A stretch of 64,000 bases of DNA from Phaeosaccion multiseriatum. Its lineage: Eukaryota > Protista > Ochrophyta, other classes. The stretch covers positions 1,736,001 through 1,800,000 of the forward strand of contig OZ218963.1 of NCBI GenBank assembly GCA_965112735.1, given 5' to 3'. Of this stretch, positions 1,793-37,276 are shown in pieces (the first letter of the stretch is position 1; every line of letters starts with the position of its first letter). The position numbers and the translations under genes are program-made. The notes below the pieces were generated by a model. The model was not told the DNA's origin and made no database searches. It was given only the letters and a program-made list of their open reading frames with translations.

Positions 1793-4700
1793 GTTTTCTC
1801 ATACAGCCATGCCTTAACATACCGACTGGGGCATGCATCGGTCGTCGGGGGGCAGAGGGGGCAGATCGTGTGGGGTGACGCTCAAACCTGCTGAGAAGAG
1901 CTTTAAGCTGCTTTGACCCTCGCGCCGTGCCTTGCGTTGCGTGAAGAGACTTCTGTGTATGTGTTGTGTGTGTGCGTGTGTGTGGGGGGGGGGGGGGGAG
2001 TATGGCTTGCTTCCTTTATTCTATTCAGAGAAGTGCACTAATTTGGTCCTTCAACCTTCCTTCGTTCCTTCCTTCCTTCGTTCCTTCCTTCCTTCCTTCC
2101 TTCCTTCCTTCCTTCCTTCCTTCCTTCCTTCCTTCTTCCTCCTTCCTCCCCTCCATATTTTCCTTCCTCCCCTCCCTCTCTCCCTTCCTTCCTTCCTTCC
2201 TTCCCTCCCTCTCTTTCTTATTTCCCCCCTCCCTTTCTCCTTCCCCCTCTCTCTCCCTCCCTTCTTTCCTTCCCTTGGTTCGGGTGTGATAATCTCTGCC
2301 TTCCTGGACTGGACGCACTTCAAGGTGAACATGCGTGAGTGGTTGCGAATAGGCCTTGTGGAGGCCAATGCCAGTGGCGGCGGAGACAGCGACTCCGTTC
2401 TGCAGTCTGTCAAGGAAGGGAAAACTGCTGTGGTGCTGTCGGTCCTGCAGGTGCGTGCCTTGTATGAGTGAAAGCACTTGTTCTTCTCCCCCCCCCCCCC
2501 CCCCCCCGCTTTCTCCGATCCTTTGGTGTGGGTGGTGGAGGCCAAGAGCAGTTTAATCGACCGCACCCTGTACCCGTATAATTAAGTCACTCTTGTCCAT
2601 AGAGACTCCTGTGCGCCTGTGGAGTACTCTGCTTCCGATCACTCCCGATCTGCCTCTAGAATGTCTTCTCCCTTCTCCCTTCTCTCATGTGCCTTTCTCT
2701 CATCTGCACTGCTCTTCGGAACCTGCGCGTCTATCCAAAACCCACTCTCTCACTCATGCATTCACACACTCACTCACTCACTCACGTCCTCACTCACTCA
2801 CTCACTCACTCTCATTCATTCACTCATTCGCTCTTTCACTCAACTACTCTTCTCACTCACTCACTTCCTCACTCACTCACTCACTTATTCACTCACTCAC
2901 TCACTCACCCACGTCCTCACTCACTCACTCACTCACCCACGTCCTTACTCACTCACTCAGTCACTTCCTCACTCACTCACTCACTCACTCACTCACTCAC
3001 TTCCTCACTTCCTCACTCACTCACCTACTCACTCACTCACCCACGTCCTCACTCACTGCCTCACTCACCCACTCACTTCCTCACTCACTCACTCACTCAG
3101 TCACTTCCTCACTCACTCACTCACTCACTCACTCACTCACCCACTCACTTCCTCACTCACTCACTCACTCACTCACTTCTTCAGGCACTTCTTCAGTCAC
3201 TCACTCACTGCCTCACTTACTCACCGCCTCACTCACTCACTTCCTACCTCCCTCCCTCCCTCCCTCACTCACTCACTCACTCACTCACTCACTCACTCAC
3301 TCACTCACTCACTCACTCACTCCCTCACTCCCTCACTCCGTCACTCCCTCACTCTGTCACTCCCTCACTCCTTCACTCCCTCTCTCCCTCCCTTGCTCCC
3401 TCCCTCCCTCCCTCCCTCCCCCCCTCCCTTCTTCTCTCCCCTCTTCTCCCTTACTCACAGCTGGCATGGGTGCAGCTGCTTCGTCGGCCCGTGCGCCTCT
3501 CCACCCCTGGGGCCCGCCTGCCTGAGAGTCTGGAGATGGACGGAGAACGCCTTGCTGCAGTCAGAGACACTTTGGACAGCGTGGCGCTCACCGCCACTCT
3601 CTGCGTGCTGCTAAGACAGGTGGGTAGCACACACGCACATACACGCACCCACACGCAGATACACGCACACACACGCCCCCCCCCCCCCCACACACACACG
3701 CGCGCCCGCACACATGCACACACACACACACACATGTCGACGCTTGACCCCCACCCCACTGTCGACTCTCTGAACTTGCTGTCTTCCGCCGCTCTCCTTC
3801 GGCTGTCCGCCCGTCAGGTGATGGCCCGACTGCACTGTCCCTTCCCTGTGGCCTCTCAGGAGCGCCTTCAACACAGACTCATGATCCTCGTCACAGACCC
3901 CTCCAACATGGTGCGTAGGAAGGATGGAAGGATGGAAGGAAGGAAGGGAGATATGGATGGAAGGAAGGAAGGATGGAAGGAGGGAAGGAAGGAAGGACGG
4001 AAGGAGGGAAGAAAGGAAGGAAGGAGGGAGCAGGAAGGAAGGGAAGGGAAAGGAAGGAAGGAAGGAAGAAAGGAAGGAAGGAAGGAAGGAAGGAAGGAAA
4101 GGAAGGAAGGGAAGGAAGGAGGGAGGGAAGAAAAGGAAGGAAGGAAGGAAGGATGAGAGGAAGGAAGAAGGAAAAGGTTCAATGAGTCAATTTCCTTTCA
4201 GCTTCCTTTGTTTCCGACCCATTGCAAGAGGTGTACATGCGGCTCGGCTTAACATTCTTTGTGCTCGACACTACTTGTGTGTGACACTACTACTACTTAC
4301 GTACTACTACTTCTGTTGTCTCGTCTTTCTGCCCGGCACTCTGCACTCTATTCTCTGCTCTGGATCTTAGGTGAGGCTACCCCAGCTCGTGGAGGAGGTG
4401 GTTTCCGAAGCCAAGCATCTCTTTCTCTCCCGCCCTGCGTCAACCCCTCCCGTCTCTGCATGTGCGGTCCCGGGGGGTGCGGCCCCGGGGGGGGCGCCAC
4501 TGAAGGAGGAGGATGAGGACAGCCTTCGAAGCCTGCTCCGGAACAGTGCTGACCCCGACAATGAGGTGGGTGGGTGTGAGTGGGTGTGAGTGGGTGTGAG
4601 TGGGTATCAGTGGGGGTATCTCCGAGGCAATCTCTCTTGGCCTTCCCGGTGGTGGCCTTTAGTGTTAGGGAGAAGAGCTCCGCCCCTTAGGGTACCATCC

Positions 4701-7700
4701 ATCCATCCGTCTCCATCCCATCTAACAGTTGGCCCTGCGGTACCCCACCCTGCATCGCATGTACCCTTACGTGATGCCCTTACGTACCCGTACGTACTCC
4801 CTCGAATTGCTGCCGTACACCCGTTGCGTTTGCCCCACAGGTGTTCAAAGTGTTCTTCGATCGCACCTTGTCTGTGGTGCGCGGCTCGTTGGGCGGTGGC
4901 GGTGTGGAGGCTCTTTGCGTCAAGTACGGCCTCAAGGCCTTTGAGAAGCCCCTCGGGGAGCAGGGCGACAAGCTGCGCATGTGAGTGTGTGTGTATATGT
5001 GTGTATATGTGTGTTTGTGTGTGTGCGTGTGTGCGTGCGTGCGCGTGTGCGTGTGTGCGTGTGTGTGCGTGTGAAGGTGTAGGTGGGTAAGTGGGGCGCT
5101 CAATGAGGAGGTACCGCTTTTATTCAAGAGTTTACAACACCGGCGGGGGAAAGTACGATTTCTCTGTGTTTAGCCCCTCTTTTTCAAACTCGTAGATATA
5201 CCTTTGTTTGTTACATTGAGACGGGTCTTTTCCTCCATTCTTTTGGGTATCCGTACCCCCACTGACCAAAATCCTTCCTTCCACTGTCACTCTTACGAAC
5301 GATGCGCCACTCGTGCCCCATCTCGTGTGCTCACTCACACCACTCACACCACTCACACCACTCACACCACTCACACCACTCACGCCACTCACTCCACTCA
5401 CACCACTCACACCACTCACACCACTCACTCCACTCACACCACTCACACCACTCACACCACTCACACCACTCACACCACTCACACCACTCACACCACTCAC
5501 ACCACTCACACCACTCACTCCACTCACACCACTCACACCACTCACACCACTCACACCAATCACACCACTCACGCCACTCACACCACTCACACCACTCACA
5601 CCACTCACACCACTCACCCCACTCACACCACTCACTCCACTCACACCACTCACTCCACTCACACCACTCACACCACTCACACCACTCACACCACTCACAC
5701 CACTCACACCACTCACTCCACTCACACCACTCACTCCACTCACACCACTCACTCCACTCACACCACTCACACCACTCACACCACTCACACCACTCACACC
5801 ACTCACACCACTCACACCACTCACTCCACTCACACCACTCACACCACTCACACCACTCACACCACTCACACCACTCACACCACTCACACCACTCACACCA
5901 CTCACACCACTCACACCACTCACACCACTCACCCCACTCACACCACTCACACCACTCACACCACTCACACCACTCACACCACTCACACCACTCACACCAC
6001 TCACTCCACTCACACCACTCACTCCACTCACACCACTCACACCACTCACACCACTCACACCACTCACACCACTCACACCACTCACTCCACTCACACCACT
6101 CACACCACTCACACCACTCACTCCACTCACTCCACTCACACCACTCACACCACTCACACCACTCACACCACTCACACCACTCACACCACTCACACCACTC
6201 ACACCACTCACACCACTCACACCACTCACACCACTCACACCACTCACACCACTCACACCACTCACACCACTCACACCACTCACACCACTCACACCACTCA
6301 CCCCACTCACACCACTCACTCCACTCACACCACTCACTCCACTCACACCACTCACACCACTCACACCACTCACACCACTCACACCACTCACACCACTCAC
6401 TCCACTCACACCACTCACTCCACTCACACCACTCACTCCACTCACACCACTCACACCACTCACACCACTCACACCACTCACCCCACTCACACCACTCACT
6501 CCACTCACACCACTCACTCCACTCACACCACTCACACCACTCACACCACTCACACCACTCACACCACTCACACCACTCACCCCACTCACACCACTCACAC
6601 CACTCACACCACTCACACCACTCACACCACTCACCCCACTCACACCACTCACTCCACTCACACCACTCACTCCACTCACACCACTCACACCACTCACACC
6701 ACTCACACCACTCACACCACTCACTCCACTCACACCACTCACTCCACTCACACCACTCACACCACTCACACCACTCACACCACTCACACCACTCACACCA
6801 CTCACACCACTCACACCACTCACACCACTCACACCACTCACACCACTCACACCACTCACACCACTCACACCACTCACACCACTCACACCACTCACACCAC
6901 TCACACCACTCACACCACTCACACCACTCACACCACTCACACCACTCACACCACTCACACCACTCACACCACTCACACCACTCACACCACTCACTCCACT
7001 CACACCACTCACTCCACTCACACCACTCACACCACTCACCCCACTCACACCACTCACTCCACTCACACCACTCACTCCACTCACACCACTCACACCACTC
7101 ACACCACTAACCCCACTCACACCACTCACTCCACTCACACCACTCACTCCACTCACACCACTCACACCACTAACACCACTCACACCACTCACGCCACTCA
7201 CTCCACTCACACCACTCACACCACTCACACCACTCACACCACTCACACCACTCACACCACTCACACCACTCACACCACTCACACCACTCACACCACTCAC
7301 ACCACTCACACCACTCACACCACTCACACCACTCACACCACTCACACCACTCACACCACTCACACCACTCACACCACTCACACCACTCACACCACTCACA
7401 CCACTCACACCACTCACACCACTCACACCACTCACACCACTCACACCACTCACACCACTCACACCACTCACACCACTCACACCACTCACACCACTCACAC
7501 CACTCACACCACTCACACCACTCACACCACTCACACCACTCACACCACTCACACCACTCACACCACTCACACCACTCACACCACTCACACCACTCACACC
7601 ACTCACACCACTCACACCACTCACACCACTCACACCACTCACACCACTCACACCACTCACACCACTCACACCACTCACACCACTCACACCACTCACACCA

Positions 7701-9592
7701 CTCACACCACTCACACCACTCACACCACTCACACCACTCACACCACTCACACCACTCACACCACTCACACCACTCACACCACTCACACCACTCACACCAC
7801 TCACACCACTCACACCACTCACACCACTCACACCACTCACACCACTCACACCACTCACACCACTCACACCACTCACACCACTCACACCACTCACACCACT
7901 CACACCACTCACACCACTCACACCACTCACACCACTCACACCACTCACACCACTCACACCACTCACACCACTCACACCACTCACACCACCCACACCACTC
8001 ACACCACCCACACCACTCACACCACTCACACCACTCACACCACTCACACCACTCACACCACTCACACCACTCACACCACTCACACCACTCACACCACTCA
8101 CACCACTCACACCACTCACACCACTCACACCACTCACACCACTCACACCACTCACACCACTCACACCACTCACACCACTCACTCCACTCACACCACTCAC
8201 TTTACCCACACCACTCACACCACCCACACCACTCACACCACTCACACCACTCACACCACTCACACCACTCACACCACTCACACCACTCACACCACTCACA
8301 CCACTCACACCACTCACACCACTCACACCACTCACACCACTCACACCACTCACACCACTCACACCACTCACACCACTCACACCACTCACACCACTCACAC
8401 CACTCACACCACTCACACCACTCACACCACTCACACCACTCACACCACTCACTTTACCCACACCACTCACACCACCCACACCACTCACACCACTCACACC
8501 ACTCACACCACTCACACCACTCACACCACTCACACCACTCACACCACTCACACCACTCACACCACTCACACCACTCACACCACTCACACCACTCACACCA
8601 CTCACACCACTCACACCACTCACACCACTCACACCACTCACACCACTCACACCACTCACACCACTCACACCACTCACTCCACTCACACCACTCACTTTAC
8701 CCACACCACTCACACCACCCACACCACTCACACCACTCACACCACTCACACCACTCACACCACTCACACCACTCACACCACTCACACCACTCACACCACT
8801 CACACCACTCACACCACTCACACCACTCACACCACTCACACCACTCACACCACTCACACCACTCACACCACTCACACCACTCACACCACTCACACCACTC
8901 ACACCACTCACACCACTCACACCACTCACACCACTCACTTTACCCACACCACTCACACCACTCACACCACTCACACCACTCACACCACTCACACCACTCA
9001 CACCACTCACACCACTCACACCACTCACACCACTCACACCACTCACACCACTCACACCACTCACACCACTCACACCACTCACACCACTCACACCACTCAC
9101 ACCACTCACACCACTCACACCACTCACACCACTCACACCACTCACACCACTCACACCACTCACACCACTCACACCACTCACACCACTCACACCACTCACA
9201 CCACTCACACCACTCACACCACTCACACCACTCACACCACTCACACCACTCACACCACTCACACCACTCACACCACTCACACCAATCACACCACTCACAC
9301 CACTCACACCACTCACACCACTCACACCACTCACACCACTCACACCACTCACACCACTCACCCCACTCACACCACCCACACCACTCACACCACCCACACC
9401 ACTGACACCACTCACACCACTCACACTACTCACACCACTCACACCACTCACACCACTCACACCACTCACACCACTCACATCACTCACATTACCCACAGGC
9501 TCTACAAGCACAACCTCAAGGTGTTCGCCACGCACTACAGCCGGATAATGATGCAGGAGGCGAGGGCCCTCCTCATTGCTACAGGTGGATGA
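9..9592 (+). CDS. T-complex protein 11 (TCP11/SOK1) family protein, 5'-truncated by the window edge, multi-exon
   Basis: Spliced exons (9-77, 378-461, 761-919, 1427-1555, ~2325-2450, ~3461-3619, ~3818-3910, 4371-4565, 4841-4980, 9499-9592) give [46 protein letters not shown] and [13 protein letters not shown], matching TCP11 domain motifs. GT-AG boundaries keep frame; stop TGA ends at 9592. Confidence 0.8.
2745..3375 (+). repeat. Degenerate (ACTC)n microsatellite in the 3' half of a TCP11 intron
   Basis: cactcactcact runs read directly; the intron ends ttactcacag at 3460. Confidence 0.95.
5331..9497 (+). repeat. ~4.2-kb 9-bp satellite (CACTCACAC)n filling the last TCP11 intron (4981-9498)
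   Basis: Near-perfect 9-mer tandem array with variant units (cactcactc, cactcaccc, cacccacac, cactaac), ending at the acceptor cccacag. Confidence 0.98.
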
Positions 9593-10373: not shown

Positions 10374-26350
<15,977 letters not shown>

Positions 26351-29142: not shown

Positions 29143-29265
29143 TTAAACAAAAAAATCGCGAGCACGAGCATCCGTCCCCCTTCGAGTTGGTTCTCCGTTG
29201 TCGTCGCATTTTCTTCTTGTGATTCGATAATATTACGTACGCGACCCTCAATTTTCACCCCTCTT

Positions 29266-31144
29266 TCGGCTCCAGACTGGCCTAGAAGCCTATGCTCTAG
29301 GCCCTAGGCCGAGCGGCCTACAGCCGCTCTAGGCCGGCCATTTTTTCTCCCTAGGCCGGCGGTTCTAGGCCTAGGCCTCGACCTATCTGATTAGTAATTA
29401 CGGCCGGCGCAGCCGGCCTGATTACTGATTATGCTCCAGCCGGGGGCTGATTACTTATTATGGCCGGCGCACACCGTAATCTTGTCCAGGGTGGAAGGGA
29501 GGGAGGGAGGGAGGGAGGGAGGGAGGGAGGGAAGGAGGGAGGGAGGGAGGGAGGGAGGGAGGGAGGGAGGGAGGGAGGGAGGGAGGGAGGGAGGGAGGGA
29601 GGGAGGGAGGGAGGGAGGGAGGGAGGGAGGGAGGGAGGGAGGGAGGGAGGGAGGGAGGGAGGGAGGGAGGGAGGGAGGGAGGGAGGGAGGGAGGGAGGGA
29701 GGGAGGGAGGGAGGGAGGGAGGGAGGGAGGGAGGGAGGGAGGGAGGGAGGGAGGGAGGGAGGGAGGGAGGGAGGGAGGGAGGGAGGGAGGGAGGGAGGGA
29801 GGGAGGGAGGGAGGGAGGGAGGGAGGGAGGGAGGGAGGGAGGGAGGGAGGGAGGGAGGGAGGGAGGGAGGGAGGGAGGGAGGGAGGGAGGGAGGGAGGGA
29901 GGGAGGGAGGGAGGGAGGGAGGGAGGGAGGGAGGGAGGGAGGGAGGGAGGGAGGGAGGGAGGGAGGGAGGGAGGGAGGGAGGGAGGGAGGGAGGGAGGGA
30001 GGGAGGGAGGGAGGGAGGGAGGGAGGGAGGGAGGGAGGGAGGGAGGGAGGGAGGGAGGGAGGGAGGGAGGGAGGGAGGGAGGGAGGGAGGGAGGGAGGGA
30101 GGGAGGGAGGGAGGGAGGGAGGGAGGGAGGGAGGGAGGGAGGGAGGGAGGGAGGGAGGGAGGGAGGGAGGGAGGGAGGGAGGGAGGGAGGGAGGGAGGGA
30201 GGGAGGGAGGGAGGGAGGGAGGGAGGGAGGGAGGGAGGGAGGGAGGGAGGGAGGGAGGGAGGGAGGGAGGGAGGGAGGGAGGGAGGGAGGGAGGGAGGGA
30301 GGGAGGGAGGGAGGGAGGGAGGGAGGGAGGGAGGGAGGGAGGGAGGGAGGGAGGGAGGGAGGGAGGGAGGGAGGGAGGGAGGGAGGGAGGGAGGGAGGGA
30401 GGGAGGGAGGGAGGGAGGGAGGGAGGGAGGGAGGGAGGGAGGGAGGGAGGGAGGGAGGGAGGGAGGGAGGGAGGGAGGGAGGGAGGGAGGGAGGGAGGGA
30501 GGGAGGGAGGGAGGGAGGGAGGGAGGGAGGGAGGGAGGGAGGGAGGGAGGGAGGGAGGGAGGGAGGGAGGGAGGGAGGGAGGGAGGGAGGGAGGGAGGGA
30601 GGGAGGGAGGGAGGGAGGGAGGGAGGGAGGGAGGGAGGGAGGGAGGGAGGGAGGGAGGGAGGGAGGGAGGGAGGGAGGGAGGGAGGGAGGGAGGGAGGGA
30701 GGGAGGGAGGGAGGGAGGGAGGGAGGGAGGGAGGGAGGAAGGAAGGGAGGGAGGGAGGGAGGGAGGGAGGGAGGGAGGGAGGGAGGGAGGGAGGGAGGGA
30801 GGGAGGGAGGGAGGAAGGAAGGGAGGGAGGGAGGGAGTCGACCCTGGACAAGATTATCTGATTCTGATTACGGCCGGCGCAGCCGGCCTGATTACTGATT
30901 ATGACCGGCGCCAGCCGGTCTTGTTGCTTACAGCCGGTGACCAGCCGGCCTGGTTACTGATTTTGCGCCGGCCGGGGGCTGATTACTGATTACGGCCGGC
31001 GCACACCGTAACCTTGTTGTCCAGAGTCGATCTAGGCCAAGGCCGGGGGGGCTGCGCCAAAAATAGGCCTAGGCCAAAAATAGGCCTAGGCCGGGGACCT
31101 GCGGCCCCCTCTAGGCCTAGGCTTCTAGGCCGGTCTGGAGCCGA
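29266..31144. mobile_element. Non-autonomous TIR element (MITE-like, composite) carrying a (GGGA)n array
   Basis: 27-bp TIRs: TCGGCTCCAGACTGGCCTAGAAGCCTA (29266-29292) and its reverse complement with 1 mismatch (31118-31144). Identical 6-bp flanks CCTCTT (29260-29265, 31145-31150). Subterminal CTAGGCC repeats. No transposase ORF. Confidence 0.88.
29497..30837 (+). repeat. ~1.34-kb near-perfect (GGGA)n microsatellite
   Basis: Read directly; lies in the centre of the TIR element. Confidence 0.99.
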
Positions 31145-32031
31145 CCTCTTCTTCCCCTCCCTCCTGGGGCGCTTCAGCGCTCTGCCCGCTCGAGACTTGG
31201 CACCCGAGACTAGTGCCACGTCGTCGTTCTCCTCTTGCCCTCTATCTCCTTCGTCTGATTGTTTGGCCTCTCCTTCGTCCACCGGTACGCCTGTTCCCTC
31301 CTCCTCCTGCATCGCCTCCAGCGCCGACCGACTGTCTTCGCCTCCCTCTTTGCTCATGACGCTCTCGGCCCATCGTCCACTCGCAGCCATCATCTTGTCC
31401 GGCCATTGCAAAGGGGGCAACGCTGTAGCCGGAACAGCAGCGGCAGCAGAGGCCATGAGCAGGCGCGTGGAGCATGAAATTTGGGGAAATATTACTTTTT
31501 GTACCTTACGTAAGTACGTCACGTAAGGGAATTGGGTGTCTGTCCGCTGGGGAAATGGGTCCCCCCTCGCCCCCCCCCCCCCTTTTCTACTTTCCAGAGG
31601 TGCGTGTGACTTTCCTCTCAGCGTCCAGAGTAGCCATAGGCAAGGGAGGCACAACAAAGCCATCAGAACCTCAAACAAACCTGTATCCTTCGCAGTTACG
31701 GCAAAACAGGAAAAAAAAAAAAATGGGAGGAAAGAAACCCGAAAACTATAAGTTCCCCGGGGCAATGAAGAGAAAAAAAGGGTACACGGAGGGTGTATAA
31801 ATGCATCTTAATTTTTTTTGACGGCCCGCTGGTGAGGCTTGGCAAAGCATCCTGGCTTTCCCCCAGAATTTTGTCACTCTTTGCAAGGGCTTACTAACTT
31901 CGAGCGTTCGACAACGGTCGGAGCTACCCGTACGAGGTGAAGGATCAAGAGCTTCATGTTAACTAACTAAACTGAAGACGTCCAAATCTGCTGAAATTGC
32001 TCTGTGGACTACGACACATCGCCCCACTTCA

Positions 32032-34566: not shown

Positions 34567-37276
34567 GCAACTACCGCACGTATCGTACCTTGCCCTCCTG
34601 TACCTCCTCTGCAAGCTGTCTGTCGAGCACGTCCCAGGCCTCCTCCCCCACGAGCTCGGACACCAGGTATACGCCCTCGGGGGTCGCCGAGTCCTGCACA
34701 TGGCACAGGGCATATGAGCATAGAGCATATGGGTAAAGGGCATGTGGGTATAGGGCATATGGGCAAAGGGCATGTGGGTATAGGGCATATGGGCAAAGGG
34801 TATATAGGTGAAGGGCAGATGGGTATAGGGCATATGGATATAGGGCAGATGGGTTTAGGGCATATGGGCAAAGGGCATATGGGCAAAGGGCATGTGGGGA
34901 TAGGACATATGGTCAAAGGGCATATGGGTATTGGGCATATGGGTATAGGGCATATGGGCATACGGGTATAGGGCGTATGGGTACAGAGCATATGGGCATA
35001 GGGCATACGGGTATAGGGCATATGGGTATAGGGCATATGGGCAAAGGGCAAATGGGCAAAGGGTATATGGGTAAAGGGCATATGGGTATAGGGCATAGGG
35101 GCAAAGGGCATAAAGGTATAAGGCATATGGGTTTAGGGCATATGGGCATAGGGCATATGGGCAAAGGGCATATGGGTATAAGGCATATGGGTTAAGGGCA
35201 TATGGGTATAGGGCATATGGGCATAGGGCATATGGGTGTAGGGCATATGGGCATGGGGCATAGGTATAGGGCATATGGGTTTAGGGCATATGGGCGTAGG
35301 ACGTATGGGCATAGGGCATATGGGTATGGGGCATAAGGGCATAAGGCATACGGGTATAGGGCATATGGGTAGATATAAGGGCACACGAGTATTCCCCAAG
35401 GAGGGAAGCCTTTGCCTACCTCGTGGTAGGGCGGGAGGAAGCTTCTCCTGGCGGCCGTTACTGCCCGTGCGGCAGCGTCGAGCTTGGTCTTGACGGGGTC
35501 AGCCCCTTCCCCTTCAGGCTCAGAGGCTGCCCCTAAGGCGCCGGATGCGGCACCTGAGGCGCCCTTGCCTTCCTGTTTGACACGATGGCAGGAAAGATAA
35601 GGTGTGTGTGTGGGGGGGAGGATGATAGAGAATAAGGTCAACAATGTCAGACAAATGTAACTAGAATGCAAACTCACACATCGTGAGCGAAACTGAAACA
35701 GCACTTGGCACCCAAATCAGTTGCACTCCTTTGATAACTTGATGCTTGAGACACCTTCCCTCCCTCCCTTCCCCCCCCACCGACTCGCCTGTAGCGCCTG
35801 TTGCAAAGCCCTCCCCATGGCGCCTCCCCCCACGACCCTGTCCGAGTCGATTATGTTGGAGCGTGCACTGCGGACCGCCGCCTGCTTCTTCTTGGACCCA
35901 AAGGCGCTGATTAGAGACGCACGTCGGTCCTGGCCGAAGCAGTGGCAGGGGCAGGGGCATGGGCATGGGCGGGGGCAGGGGTGGCAGTTGGTGATACGGT
36001 GGTAACAGCAGCAGCAGCCGGGAGCAGGGGGCAGCCATAGGAAGGGATGAGCGAGGGGTAGCACAGAAGATGGAGAGGACGGTGGTGGTGCGAGAAGGAA
36101 GCGGAGCGGCGATAAAAAGTATCTCTAAGAAGAAGGGAACAAGCAGAGCTGAATTGCGGCGCTTACTTGGGCGGAGACGTGACTGAGCGAAAAGTCCGCA
36201 ACAGTGCTGTCGACGCCGTTGAGGCTCTGGCGGAGACTGTATGCGTGCATGGACGGATACACCTCCATCTCGCGGGTCTGAGCAGCGCGTGAAGGAGGGG
36301 GAAAGCAGAAAGCGTTTGTTTAGGAAGAAGAAGGAGAAGAAGAAGAAGAAGAAGAAGAAGAAGAAGAAGAAGAAGAAGAAGAAGAAGAAGAAGAAGAAGA
36401 AGAAGAAGAAGAGGAGGAGGAGGAGGAGGAGGAGGAGGAGGAGGAAGGGGAGGAGGAAGGGGAGGAGGAAGGGGAAGAGGAGGAGGAGGAGGAGGAGGAA
36501 GCGAACAATTTGAAGAGGAGTCGGTTCCCCGTTCCAAGTGTTCAAGCGAGGTGTTCCTAGAAGAGCGCTGGAGGGGCCTGAACCCTCCCCTTCTGTTCTT
36601 CAGTCAGACATCAGATCGGGGCCAGGGTCTGAGGCAGGGTCGGTGCCGGTGGGAAGTGTGCACAAGCCACTCGAAGAGCACCCTCACCTCCTTATCCAGC
36701 ACTCCTACGTAATAGTACGCGAGGTCAAGGTCATCCTTGCCCTGTGGGCCGTAGTTGGTACCGAAGTAAGTGGTGGCGGTCTCCTCGCTAACCTGCAAGA
36801 CAAGATAAGAGGTATGGGAGGGTTATGATACAGCCAAGGCTATGGCAATGAAAGGCACAAGGTCGTCTCGCCTAGACCATCTAACATTCGATTAGAGGGC
36901 TGGAGCGTGGCCGCTTTCAGGAGGGGGAGCAGTTGGTCACCGCACCGAGCACGTGCGTCGAGCTTCTCACGAGTTGGTGCACTTTCAGCATGACTCTTAC
37001 CACAAAGACTATGGAAGTGCCTGCGGAATGAGGGGAAGCCAGAAATACCAACGATCGCTCATCCGAAAAAGCACAACACTCACCAACACCCGTTGCCTCT
37101 TCTTCCTGCTTCCTACGGGTTGATGCATGCTGAAGTCCATGCCCTGTCGTGCGGTATGATGATTTGCAAGCGAGAAAGGGGAAATGAGATGTCTAAGAAA
37201 GGCGAGCATGCACAACAATTCACGGGTCCACAGGAACCTTCGCCCTCACTGCTAATCCTCCTCCTCCTCCTCCTCC

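Follow-up and report, generated by a model that had tools for sequence, protein, structure and literature searches.

GGGA-type simple repeats are abundant in this genome, and the 64-kb window analyzed here, which is the whole stretch of DNA under study, contains one that is framed by nested inverted repeats. This arrangement raises the question of whether a long (GGGA)n array can be carried around a genome as the cargo of a DNA transposon and, if so, how it came to lie inside one. We propose, with a probability of roughly 0.8, that the element is a non-autonomous cut-and-paste DNA transposon with terminal inverted repeats (TIRs), built in three layers and amplified together with a captured (GGGA)n tract.

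Architecture of the window element

The element spans 1,879 bp (29266-31144) and is non-coding, comprising outer ends, two inner units and the (GGGA)n array. The only open reading frames (ORFs) over it are translations of the repeat, and the ORFs adjoining it had no Pfam match. The outer shell, referred to here as family A, is bounded by 27-bp TIRs with one mismatch, recognized by direct reading and by a repeat search that extends the pair to 30 nt at 93%. The left TIR (29266-29292, forward strand) starts with TCGG and the right TIR (31118-31144, reverse strand) ends with CCGA. Immediately outside, the sequence CCTCTT is read at 29260-29265 and again, as an exact match, at 31145-31150, forming the target-site duplication (TSD). 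The earlier note on this DNA had placed the TIRs, their termini and the duplication at these same coordinates. Among aligned copies of the family, the lone mismatch, which sits in the right TIR, is private to the window copy, and the remaining copies read GGCCAGTCTGG.

The left arm (29266-29377, forward strand) consists of the terminal repeat followed by CTAGGCC subterminal repeats and aligns over its full length to the left arms of 23 other copies. The right arm (31031-31144, forward strand) was delimited by aligning 26 right arms, among which the window copy has a private deletion of ~21 bp relative to most copies. CTAGGCC occurs 18 times in the whole 64-kb window (shuffle mean 8.8), and 16 of these occurrences fall within the arms (29279-29377 and 31032-31131), in agreement with the subterminal repeats reported previously. 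Across the family, the arms comprise 230–310 bp of short repeats.

Two units of a GATTA/GGCCGG type, family B, lie inside the shell. Inner unit 1 (29378-29495, forward strand), identified from direct repeats and alignment, is short by ~11 bp at its 5' end, a deletion common to all aligned copies, and its 3' end is mutated to GTGGA in the window copy. Inner unit 2 (30838-31030, forward strand), found by direct reading and repeat search, is complete and has its own inverted ends, TCGACCCTGGACAA...TTGTCCAGAGTCGA, which are complementary at 13/14 positions. The two units are direct repeats of one another (91% over 76 nt, 100% over 37 nt). The (GGGA)n array (29496-30837, forward strand, ~1.34 kb) fills exactly the gap from the 3' end of unit 1 to the 5' end of unit 2; TRF called it at 29488-30837 with period 4, 337.5 copies and 99% matches, and its longest perfect run is 1,204 bp. 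It is flanked by a 19-nt inverted repeat (29477-29495 / 30838-30856, 95% complementary), the 19-mer of which has only 2 matches in the window (0.01 expected). One shortened and one complete unit, the inverted ends of the latter, the inverted repeat around the array and a cargo of ~1.3 kb had all been described from the sequence, and each was recovered here.

The block formed by the two units and the array is itself flanked by TAGGCC. One copy lies directly 5' of inner unit 1 (29372-29377), where the exact left junction is present in 17 of 26 copies, and another lies after inner unit 2 (31033-31038). These are the putative left and right duplications from insertion of the inner composite. On the right, TCGA is directly followed by TAGGCC in most copies; in the window copy and in locus L019 two extra bases intervene, displacing the motif by 2 bp in the window copy.

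A non-coding family with 6-bp target-site duplications

In the 67-Mb genome, which a feature search with a VPS8-like ORF showed to be eukaryotic, the outer 24-mer of family A has 179 matches with no more than 2 mismatches (93 on the forward strand, 86 on the reverse, at least 100 of them exact), and the reversed control has none; the window element therefore belongs to a real transposon family and is not a product of chance. The family comprises roughly 75–90 filled copies. Among 33 unique adjacent end pairs at the fetched loci, 26 carry perfect 6-bp duplications, two carry perfect 7-bp duplications and one matches at 5/6, with four lacking a clear duplication. The perfect 6-bp duplications fall at 21 distinct target sites, and the termini are TCGG...CCGA in all copies. 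The tally of TSD lengths that had been suggested earlier thus centers on 6 bp.

The window copy is embedded in a host repeat that lies outside the element and serves as context. Its left part (29222-29265, forward strand) is made up of the 44 bp of left flank next to the element, the only portion of that flank that recurs genome-wide (91–95% identity), and its right part (31151-31644, forward strand) has 45 genome matches at up to 97% identity. Paralogous copies of this repeat at C4:3215050 and C3:2763978 probably represent empty sites of the kind that the earlier note had proposed to look for: judging from match coordinates, both flanks abut there across one 6-bp target. The host repeat was also considered as a transposon end and rejected, as its left-flank 26-mer has only 10 genome matches and 0 inverted pairs, and most matches start with TTGA and not TCGA. 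Joining the flanks in silico yielded no continuous ORF over the insertion site, and hence no sign of an interrupted coding exon; Rfam matched no family at the window site.

Conserved TIRs, fixed-length TSDs, an empty site by coordinates and no coding capacity place the element among non-autonomous TIR (class II, MITE-like) transposons. The search for an autonomous partner, which the earlier note had envisaged, turned up none with A or B ends; it covered the pairing of exact end matches by distance, long ORFs and profile searches. The only long pair of A ends (C9:215018-221463, 6.4 kb) was rejected as an autonomous copy, being a shell interrupted by a nested Gypsy/chromovirus with reverse transcriptase, RNase H, integrase and chromo domains. 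None of ten long ORFs at the fetched loci codes for a transposase. A search of the genome with the PF21787 profile, for P-like transposases, gave 0 matches and was equally silent in control genomes, and the NHL profile hit only four weak places in the genome, which give no hint of a transposon family. Among metagenomes, an exact search with the A end gave 0 matches; three matches of the B end lacked the GATTA/GGCCGG context and were dismissed as chance.

The earlier note had also read the near-identical TIRs as a sign of recent insertion. This is unsupported, because TIR identity provides no age clock for cut-and-paste elements and because the window copy differs by 3.6% from the family consensus, which puts it with the more diverged of the 26. 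Some family copies are only 0.4–1% from the consensus.

Probable nesting of the inner units and a proposed route to a filled shell

Family B is not confined to the interior of family A. The 19-mer of the B end has 398 genome matches (0 in the control), about twice as many as the A end (398 vs 179), so that the genome search proposed for further copies of the inner unit found many, as it did for the outer end. At locus L053, a solo B of the inner type is flanked by CTGTCG/CTGTCC, and an A copy is nested inside that B. The ends of the two families share 12 of 24 positions counted from base 1, a value reached by 0.64% of shuffles.

A shell that had never received the inner block would be predicted to read GGCGGTTC-(TAGGCC)x3-GGGGGGGCTGCGCC, and exactly two matches to this pattern exist in the genome (C4:1592428-1592467 and C13:1470797-1470836; exact pattern matches, located by coordinates), which we regard as probable empty shells. 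They compare in number with ~75–90 filled copies. Filled shells have four TAGGCC, and the one fewer in the candidate empty shells would fit a unit-array-unit block that inserted whole and made a 6-bp duplication of its own. TAGGCC is, however, a repeated arm motif, so three versus four copies could instead be repeat-number variation. Together, the two probable empty shells and the solo B with its 6-bp duplication lend support to the nested, MITE-in-MITE or composite, architecture that had been put forward for the window copy.

We hypothesize the following order of events. The family A shell would supply the working ends and the CTAGGCC-rich subterminal repeats, and a transposase made elsewhere in the genome presumably recognizes these and makes a 6-bp, occasionally 7-bp, staggered cut. 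The two smaller elements inside the shell, with TCGACC...GGTCGA ends, belong to an independently mobile family, likewise with a 6-bp duplication, and are placed tail-to-head with the (GGGA)n tract occupying the exact gap between them. Two B elements may first have come to adjoin, or lie within, a GGGA-type tract. The outermost B ends would then have served to move the pair as one block into a TAGGCC target within an A element, and an 11-bp loss at the 5' end of the block would have frozen it in place. Finally, the filled A shell would have been amplified to its present copy number of about 75–90, and the tract would have reached every new site with it.

The arrangement of the motifs bears on whether the block arrived in one step. 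It is conceivable that the B units entered the shell one by one and that the array grew from a 6-bp duplication or a spacer left between them, since the smallest array is only 36 bp and growth from such a short seed can be imagined. Separate insertions into TAGGCC, however, would leave TAGGCC between the units, and the spacer instead starts with AGGG directly after unit 1. In all copies this spacer stops directly at the start of the second unit, and TAGGCC flanks only the outer sides of the pair; we consider stepwise entry unlikely.

A simpler history would dispense with nesting altogether: family A would be one family, the GATTA/GGCCGG units its internal sub-repeats, and the array would have arisen de novo from an AGGG proto-repeat in a master copy. 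In favor of such a history, no fetched copy has the shell and B units without the array, and the common architecture of the copies gives the array a single origin. The inner units nevertheless have complete inverted ends of their own, and these ends are the more frequent ones in the genome. One unit stands alone outside any shell and is flanked by a 6-bp duplication of its own, and shells without the whole inner block, with exactly one TAGGCC fewer, appear to exist. A history without nesting is thus quite improbable, and we retain the reading of a captured block within a nested element.

The internal (GGGA)n array and its place among known systems

The (GGGA)n purine array is present in all 26 TSD-verified copies, where it ranges from 36 to 1,572 bp, always lies exactly between the inner units and always points the same way with respect to the arms. 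The array thus travels with the copies, a point that the earlier note had singled out for checking. Its junctions are constant over the 26 copies (...GGGTCGA/AGGG... and ...GGGAG/TCGACCC...), and the junction of B end and array occurs 75 times genome-wide, near the number of shells. By coordinates, some of these junctions, for example at C1:1601663-1603208, C1:6347096-6351511 and C2:2454320-2455033, are away from the listed A ends and are candidates for unit-array-unit blocks without a shell.

Arrays change in length in place, as is seen from recent segmental duplicates, between which the length differs by hundreds of bases. Loci L002 and L008 have flanks that are 99–100% identical and arrays of 901 and 579 bp, and loci L052, L054 and L055 have flanks that are 99.7% identical and arrays of 179, 479 and 452 bp; for long perfect arrays, these assembled lengths may be imprecise. 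The array would then be passive cargo that grows and shrinks after insertion, presumably by replication slippage or unequal exchange.

These two clear duplicate groups, and the difficulty of assembling long perfect tetranucleotide arrays, could also suggest that the copies derive mainly from segmental duplication, or that array lengths are assembly artefacts, with no need for transposition and real length change. We judge this very unlikely: 21 distinct target duplications and flanks are represented, the remaining copies share no flanks, and lengths are continuous from the shortest to the longest array, with interrupted and imperfect arrays included. It is scarcely credible that the elements do not carry the array and that separate small elements instead inserted, time and again, to the left and right of (GGGA)n tracts already in place, in the manner of the TA-targeting MITEs of pineapple or rice. 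MITEs that target microsatellites are documented (PMC8449440), GGGA-type tracts abound in the genome (~62,000 overlapping 40-mer matches) and several outer duplications are pyrimidine or purine tracts. Homopurine/homopyrimidine targets are not significantly enriched, however (5/21 vs a 14% background, p=0.17). At 21 sites the array lies between the same left and right arms, and one duplication encloses the unit as a whole. The array/B-end junctions do not differ between copies, the array is internal in 26/26 copies with unrelated sequence outside the element, and the empty-site flanks abut, by coordinates, without an array.

Roughly 13–16% of the genome's pure (GGGA)n with at least 10 repeats is held by the family, which bears out the suggestion that simple sequence repeats could spread by way of this element. 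Because most genomic (GGGA)n sits outside the family, it is one route of (GGGA)n spread and not the main one. A further possibility, speculative and rather improbable, is that the A and B elements, with their TCG-type ends and 6/7-bp duplications, form the non-coding wing of an undescribed P-related superfamily in this protist and that the G-quadruplex-capable array, far from neutral, has helped the filled shell to outnumber the empty one, for example by stalling replication or favoring gap-repair copying. If the array did act in this way, transposition would be a self-reinforcing generator of long (GGGA)n tracts.

The spread of a repeat around a genome by transposition is an already known type of event. 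The value of this case lies in a clean stepwise record of a simple repeat becoming mobile, with most stages visible in one genome: a shell that is probably empty, an inner element on its own, the filled shell at ~90 copies, and duplicates with arrays changed by hundreds of bases. It quantifies the share of the genome's long (GGGA)n that is due to one transposon family (roughly one seventh) and provides about 90 dated homologous loci at which the growth and shrinkage of a G-quadruplex-capable microsatellite can be measured. The non-coding elements described here, which consistently have 6/7-bp duplications and TCG ends, also enlarge a transposon group that fits none of the named superfamilies compared here.

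Among these superfamilies, IS3EU/GingerRoot elements have 6-bp duplications and TA..TA, occasionally TG..CA, termini (PMC10045372), sharing the duplication length with family A and differing in the termini. Dada elements produce 6–7 bp duplications, lack terminal inverted repeats and insert only in small RNA genes (tRNA or snRNA) (PMC3706591); the duplication length is alike, whereas family A has 27-bp TIRs and 21 different targets, with no Rfam match at the window site. P elements and P-MITEs make 8-bp duplications (PMC1562414), and their end repeats of 27–31 bp resemble those of family A, in which duplications are 6 bp, rarely 7 and not 8. None of the three fits TCGG...CCGA ends combined with 6/7-bp duplications at varied targets.

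The inner block recalls the bacterial composite transposons Tn5 and Tn10, and also the macrotransposition that paired Ac/Ds or P ends bring about in eukaryotes. In each, two copies of a small element mobilize the DNA between them via their outermost ends, as the TAGGCC flanks and the candidate empty shells suggest for family B; the difference is that the DNA captured here is a simple repeat and not genes. Micron of rice is a microsatellite-targeting MITE. Such MITEs are, like family A, tightly tied to one microsatellite motif, with clustered or adjacent insertions; there, however, the microsatellite is the target flanking the element, whereas in family A it is cargo inside the element, which is flanked by unrelated DNA, either unique or repeated. 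The same applies to the microsatellite-targeting Ac-mMITEs of pineapple (PMC8449440).

Closer in content are DTC84 of the clam Donax trunculus and the 'pearl'-type elements of oysters and insects, which are MITEs containing tandem repeats and microsatellites (PMC3879986). These too are non-coding multi-copy mobile elements in which conserved flanks form a cassette for internal repeats and a microsatellite, and in which repeat number varies between copies so that almost every copy is unique. They have short inverted repeats, a putative AA target, a few core repeats on the 100-bp scale and a short microsatellite at one end. Family A, in contrast, has 27-bp ends and 6-bp duplications; copies vary mainly in the microsatellite, which reaches 1.5 kb and fills exactly the gap between two smaller transposons nested in the shell.

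The history proposed here is paralleled by MER6, a Mariner-derived composite MITE that took up a SINE insertion and then amplified (PMC6887750). MER6 differs in its SINE-fragment passenger, TA duplication and known parent transposase, where family A has a MITE pair with a captured microsatellite. In MER6, a shell MITE took in a foreign mobile element, and the filled form was amplified by the shell ends, spreading its passenger; the same would hold for family A. Family A likewise presents a probable shell without the insert and an insert with its own putative duplication, a parallel weakened by the repeated TAGGCC motif, and its insert comes from an independently mobile family, as the 398 B-end matches and the solo B at L053 indicate.

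Architecture and insertion site

The element at 29266-31144 (1,879 bp) is bounded by two copies of the target-site duplication (TSD) CCTCTT, read directly in the sequence (29260-29265 and 31145-31150), and by 27-bp outer inverted repeats with one mismatch (29266-29292 and 31118-31144), which the repeat search lengthens to 30 nt at 93%. Alignment with other copies showed this mismatch to be private to the window copy. The two arms, ~110 bp apiece, together contain 16 of the 18 occurrences of CTAGGCC in the window. Between them, the repeat search identified two inner units, direct repeats rich in GATTA/GGCCGG (29378-29495 and 30838-31030), the second being a complete unit with its own inverted ends, and a 19-nt inverted repeat bracketing an AGGG array (29488-30837; TRF: 337.5 copies, 99% matches). 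Every component described in the earlier note (terminal repeats, TSD, CTAGGCC motifs, inner units, 19-bp inverted repeat and array) was present where it had been placed.

The genome assembly comprises 67 Mb in 22 contigs. The window is GC-rich eukaryotic DNA with VPS8-, TBCD- and kinase-like open reading frames (ORFs) and is dense in simple repeats (72 TRF rows). Its simple-repeat content is extraordinarily high: 462 copies of the 9-mer CACTCACAC (96% matches, GC skew near -1) form a 4.2-kb array at 5332-9488, and other kilobase-scale simple repeats are AGGGTG (16742-17740), CACT (2743-3390) and a 15-mer (34707-35371).

Of the left flank, the last 44 bp alone have further copies in the genome, and the right flank has 45 or more; the element therefore lies 44 bp inside a dispersed host repeat, H. 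In the window, H occupies 29222-29265 and 31151-31644. Its partial copies number 45 or more, are 83-99% identical and show mosaic breakpoints at ~31382 and ~31504; a minus-strand ORF extending into the repeat (30983-31765) had no Pfam matches. Window positions 29260 and 31145 both map to position 3215050 of contig C4, and on C3 the 26-mer 29224-29249 maps to 2763942-2763967 with the right flank beginning at 2763978, coordinates that put both TSD copies onto one 6-bp stretch. Judged by match coordinates, these paralogous H copies are precise empty sites with a single target and no array, in line with the insertion claimed earlier. H copies on C2, C11, C14 and C5 give concordant coordinates with a discrepancy of 1-15 bp, the sequence there being rich in C and T. 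Another H copy (C1:3802084-3802898) carries a different insert of ~803 bp at exactly the window element's 6-bp target, with an end of the inner-unit type at C1:3802750; this may be a second, independent insertion into that site, or an H copy that was duplicated with its insert in place.

Family A and its constant cargo

The outer shell (ends TCGG...CCGA) belongs to a repeated family, here family A. The left and right halves of the element each have dozens of genome matches, and the 24-nt outer end has 179 (93 forward, 86 reverse, ≤2 mismatches) versus 0 for the reversed control. Reading 64 loci yielded 33 unique adjacent end pairs: 26 with perfect 6-bp TSDs, representing 21 different targets, two with perfect 7-bp TSDs (L016 and L029; CACATCT and ACCATCA), one matching at 5 of 6 positions and four with none. 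The target stagger is 6 bp and, because of the two perfect 7-bp duplications, occasionally 7. The expected further copies with a consistent TSD length were thus found. If each element is turned so that the G-rich strand of its array is the top strand, pyrimidines make up 81/126 bases on that strand across 21 target sites (from loci L002-L064 and the window), and all five single-class targets are pyrimidine in the same orientation (CTCCCT, TTCTCT, CTCCTT, CCCTCT and CCTCTT). The elements may thus be biased in their orientation towards nearby purine/pyrimidine tracts, a tentative reading because the positions are not independent.

The arms of different copies are 97% identical at the median. Divergence from the majority consensus is only 0.4-1% for many copies but 3.6%, with 7 indel events, for the window copy, which is therefore not among the youngest copies, contrary to the recent insertion proposed for it.

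Each of the 26 copies contains a purine array, 36-1,572 bp long, which never changes orientation with respect to the arms, themselves different from each other. AGGG repeats start immediately after the first inner unit's end (...CTTGTCCAGGGTCGA), and the array end, ...GGGAG, is followed immediately by TCGACCCTGGACAAGAT...; both junctions are constant, bearing out the suggestion that (GGGA)n travels with the element. The junction of inner-unit end and array occurs 75 times genome-wide, near the shell count, and element length (0.66-2.15 kb) is determined almost wholly by the array.

Nesting of family B and the search for a transposase

The 19-nt end of the inner unit has 398 genome matches, twice the shell's count. 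Since a solo element of this type (ends TCGACC...GGTCGA) at L053:1400-3096 has its own flanking duplication (CTGTCG/CTGTCC, 5 of 6 identical), the inner unit is a member of a separately mobile family, B, which likewise makes 6-bp duplications. This solo element was itself hit by a nested A copy with the duplication TATGAT/TACGAT, an order of nesting opposite to that in the filled shells; positions 3170-3309 of the locus contain a partial tandem copy of the solo element's right-hand part.

Filled shells carry TAGGCC on either side of the unit-array-unit block. The shell without this block was predicted to read GGCGGTTC, three TAGGCC and GGGGGGGCTGCGCC, and an exact-string genome search returned exactly two matches (C4:1592428-1592467, with an exact match to the outer end beside it at C4:1592368, and C13:1470797-1470836); filled copies have four TAGGCC versus three in this string. 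The solo B element, the two empty-shell strings and the TAGGCC-flanked block support the nested, composite structure originally proposed. The spacer between the inner units is AGGG-type and contains no TAGGCC, which argues that both units and the intervening tract arrived together as a single block. An 11-bp loss at the 5' end of the block, common to all copies in the alignment, would have immobilised it. The exact-match pattern detected two empty shells, compared with ~75 filled junctions, a disparity that could mean either much more successful amplification of filled shells or divergence of empty ones beyond recognition by an exact string.

The A and B ends have 12 of their first 24 bases in common (TCGNCNC..GAC), a level reached by 0.64% of shuffles; together with the equal duplication length, this suggests that related or identical transposases serve both. 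No transposase was encoded in ORFs of the A-family loci read, and Pfam-based genome searches returned no transposase partner (the PF21787 query was silent in control genomes too). The sole long A copy (L061:1019-7464 = C9:215018-221463), with a 36-bp array, is split by a ~5.6-kb Gypsy/chromovirus-type retrotransposon with a 953-aa ORF (RT, RNase H, integrase and chromodomain). Judged on end sequence and duplication length taken together, the family does not match IS3EU, Dada or canonical P.

Array dynamics and comparison with known elements

Arrays change length in place after insertion, because near-identical flanks hold arrays of differing length: 901 and 579 bp in the segmental duplicates L002 and L008 (flanks 99-100% identical), and 179, 479 and 452 bp in L052, L054 and L055 (99.7%). 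Long arrays are almost perfect and short ones have more interruptions. In vitro, (GGGA)4 folds into a G-quadruplex that ranks lowest in stability and mutagenicity among those with single-base loops, and the long GGGN tracts of human DNA are predominantly (GGGA)n (PMC6614823). The perfect 40-mer (GGGA)10 has 62,018 overlapping genome matches, roughly 250 kb, of which 2,911 fall inside the 26 copies; scaled to 75-90 copies, the family would account for roughly 13-16% of the genome's pure (GGGA)n of at least 10 repeats, a rough share based on a non-random copy sample.

Earlier work has described MITEs that contain internal repeats and microsatellites (PMC3879986), composite MITEs that multiplied after acquiring a passenger (PMC6887750), and MITEs associated with microsatellites (PMC8449440). 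New here are the size and instability of the array, in a transposon group matching none of the compared superfamilies, and the persistence of an empty shell and a solo inner-family element beside filled shells. A third new feature is the position of the microsatellite, exactly between two nested MITEs.
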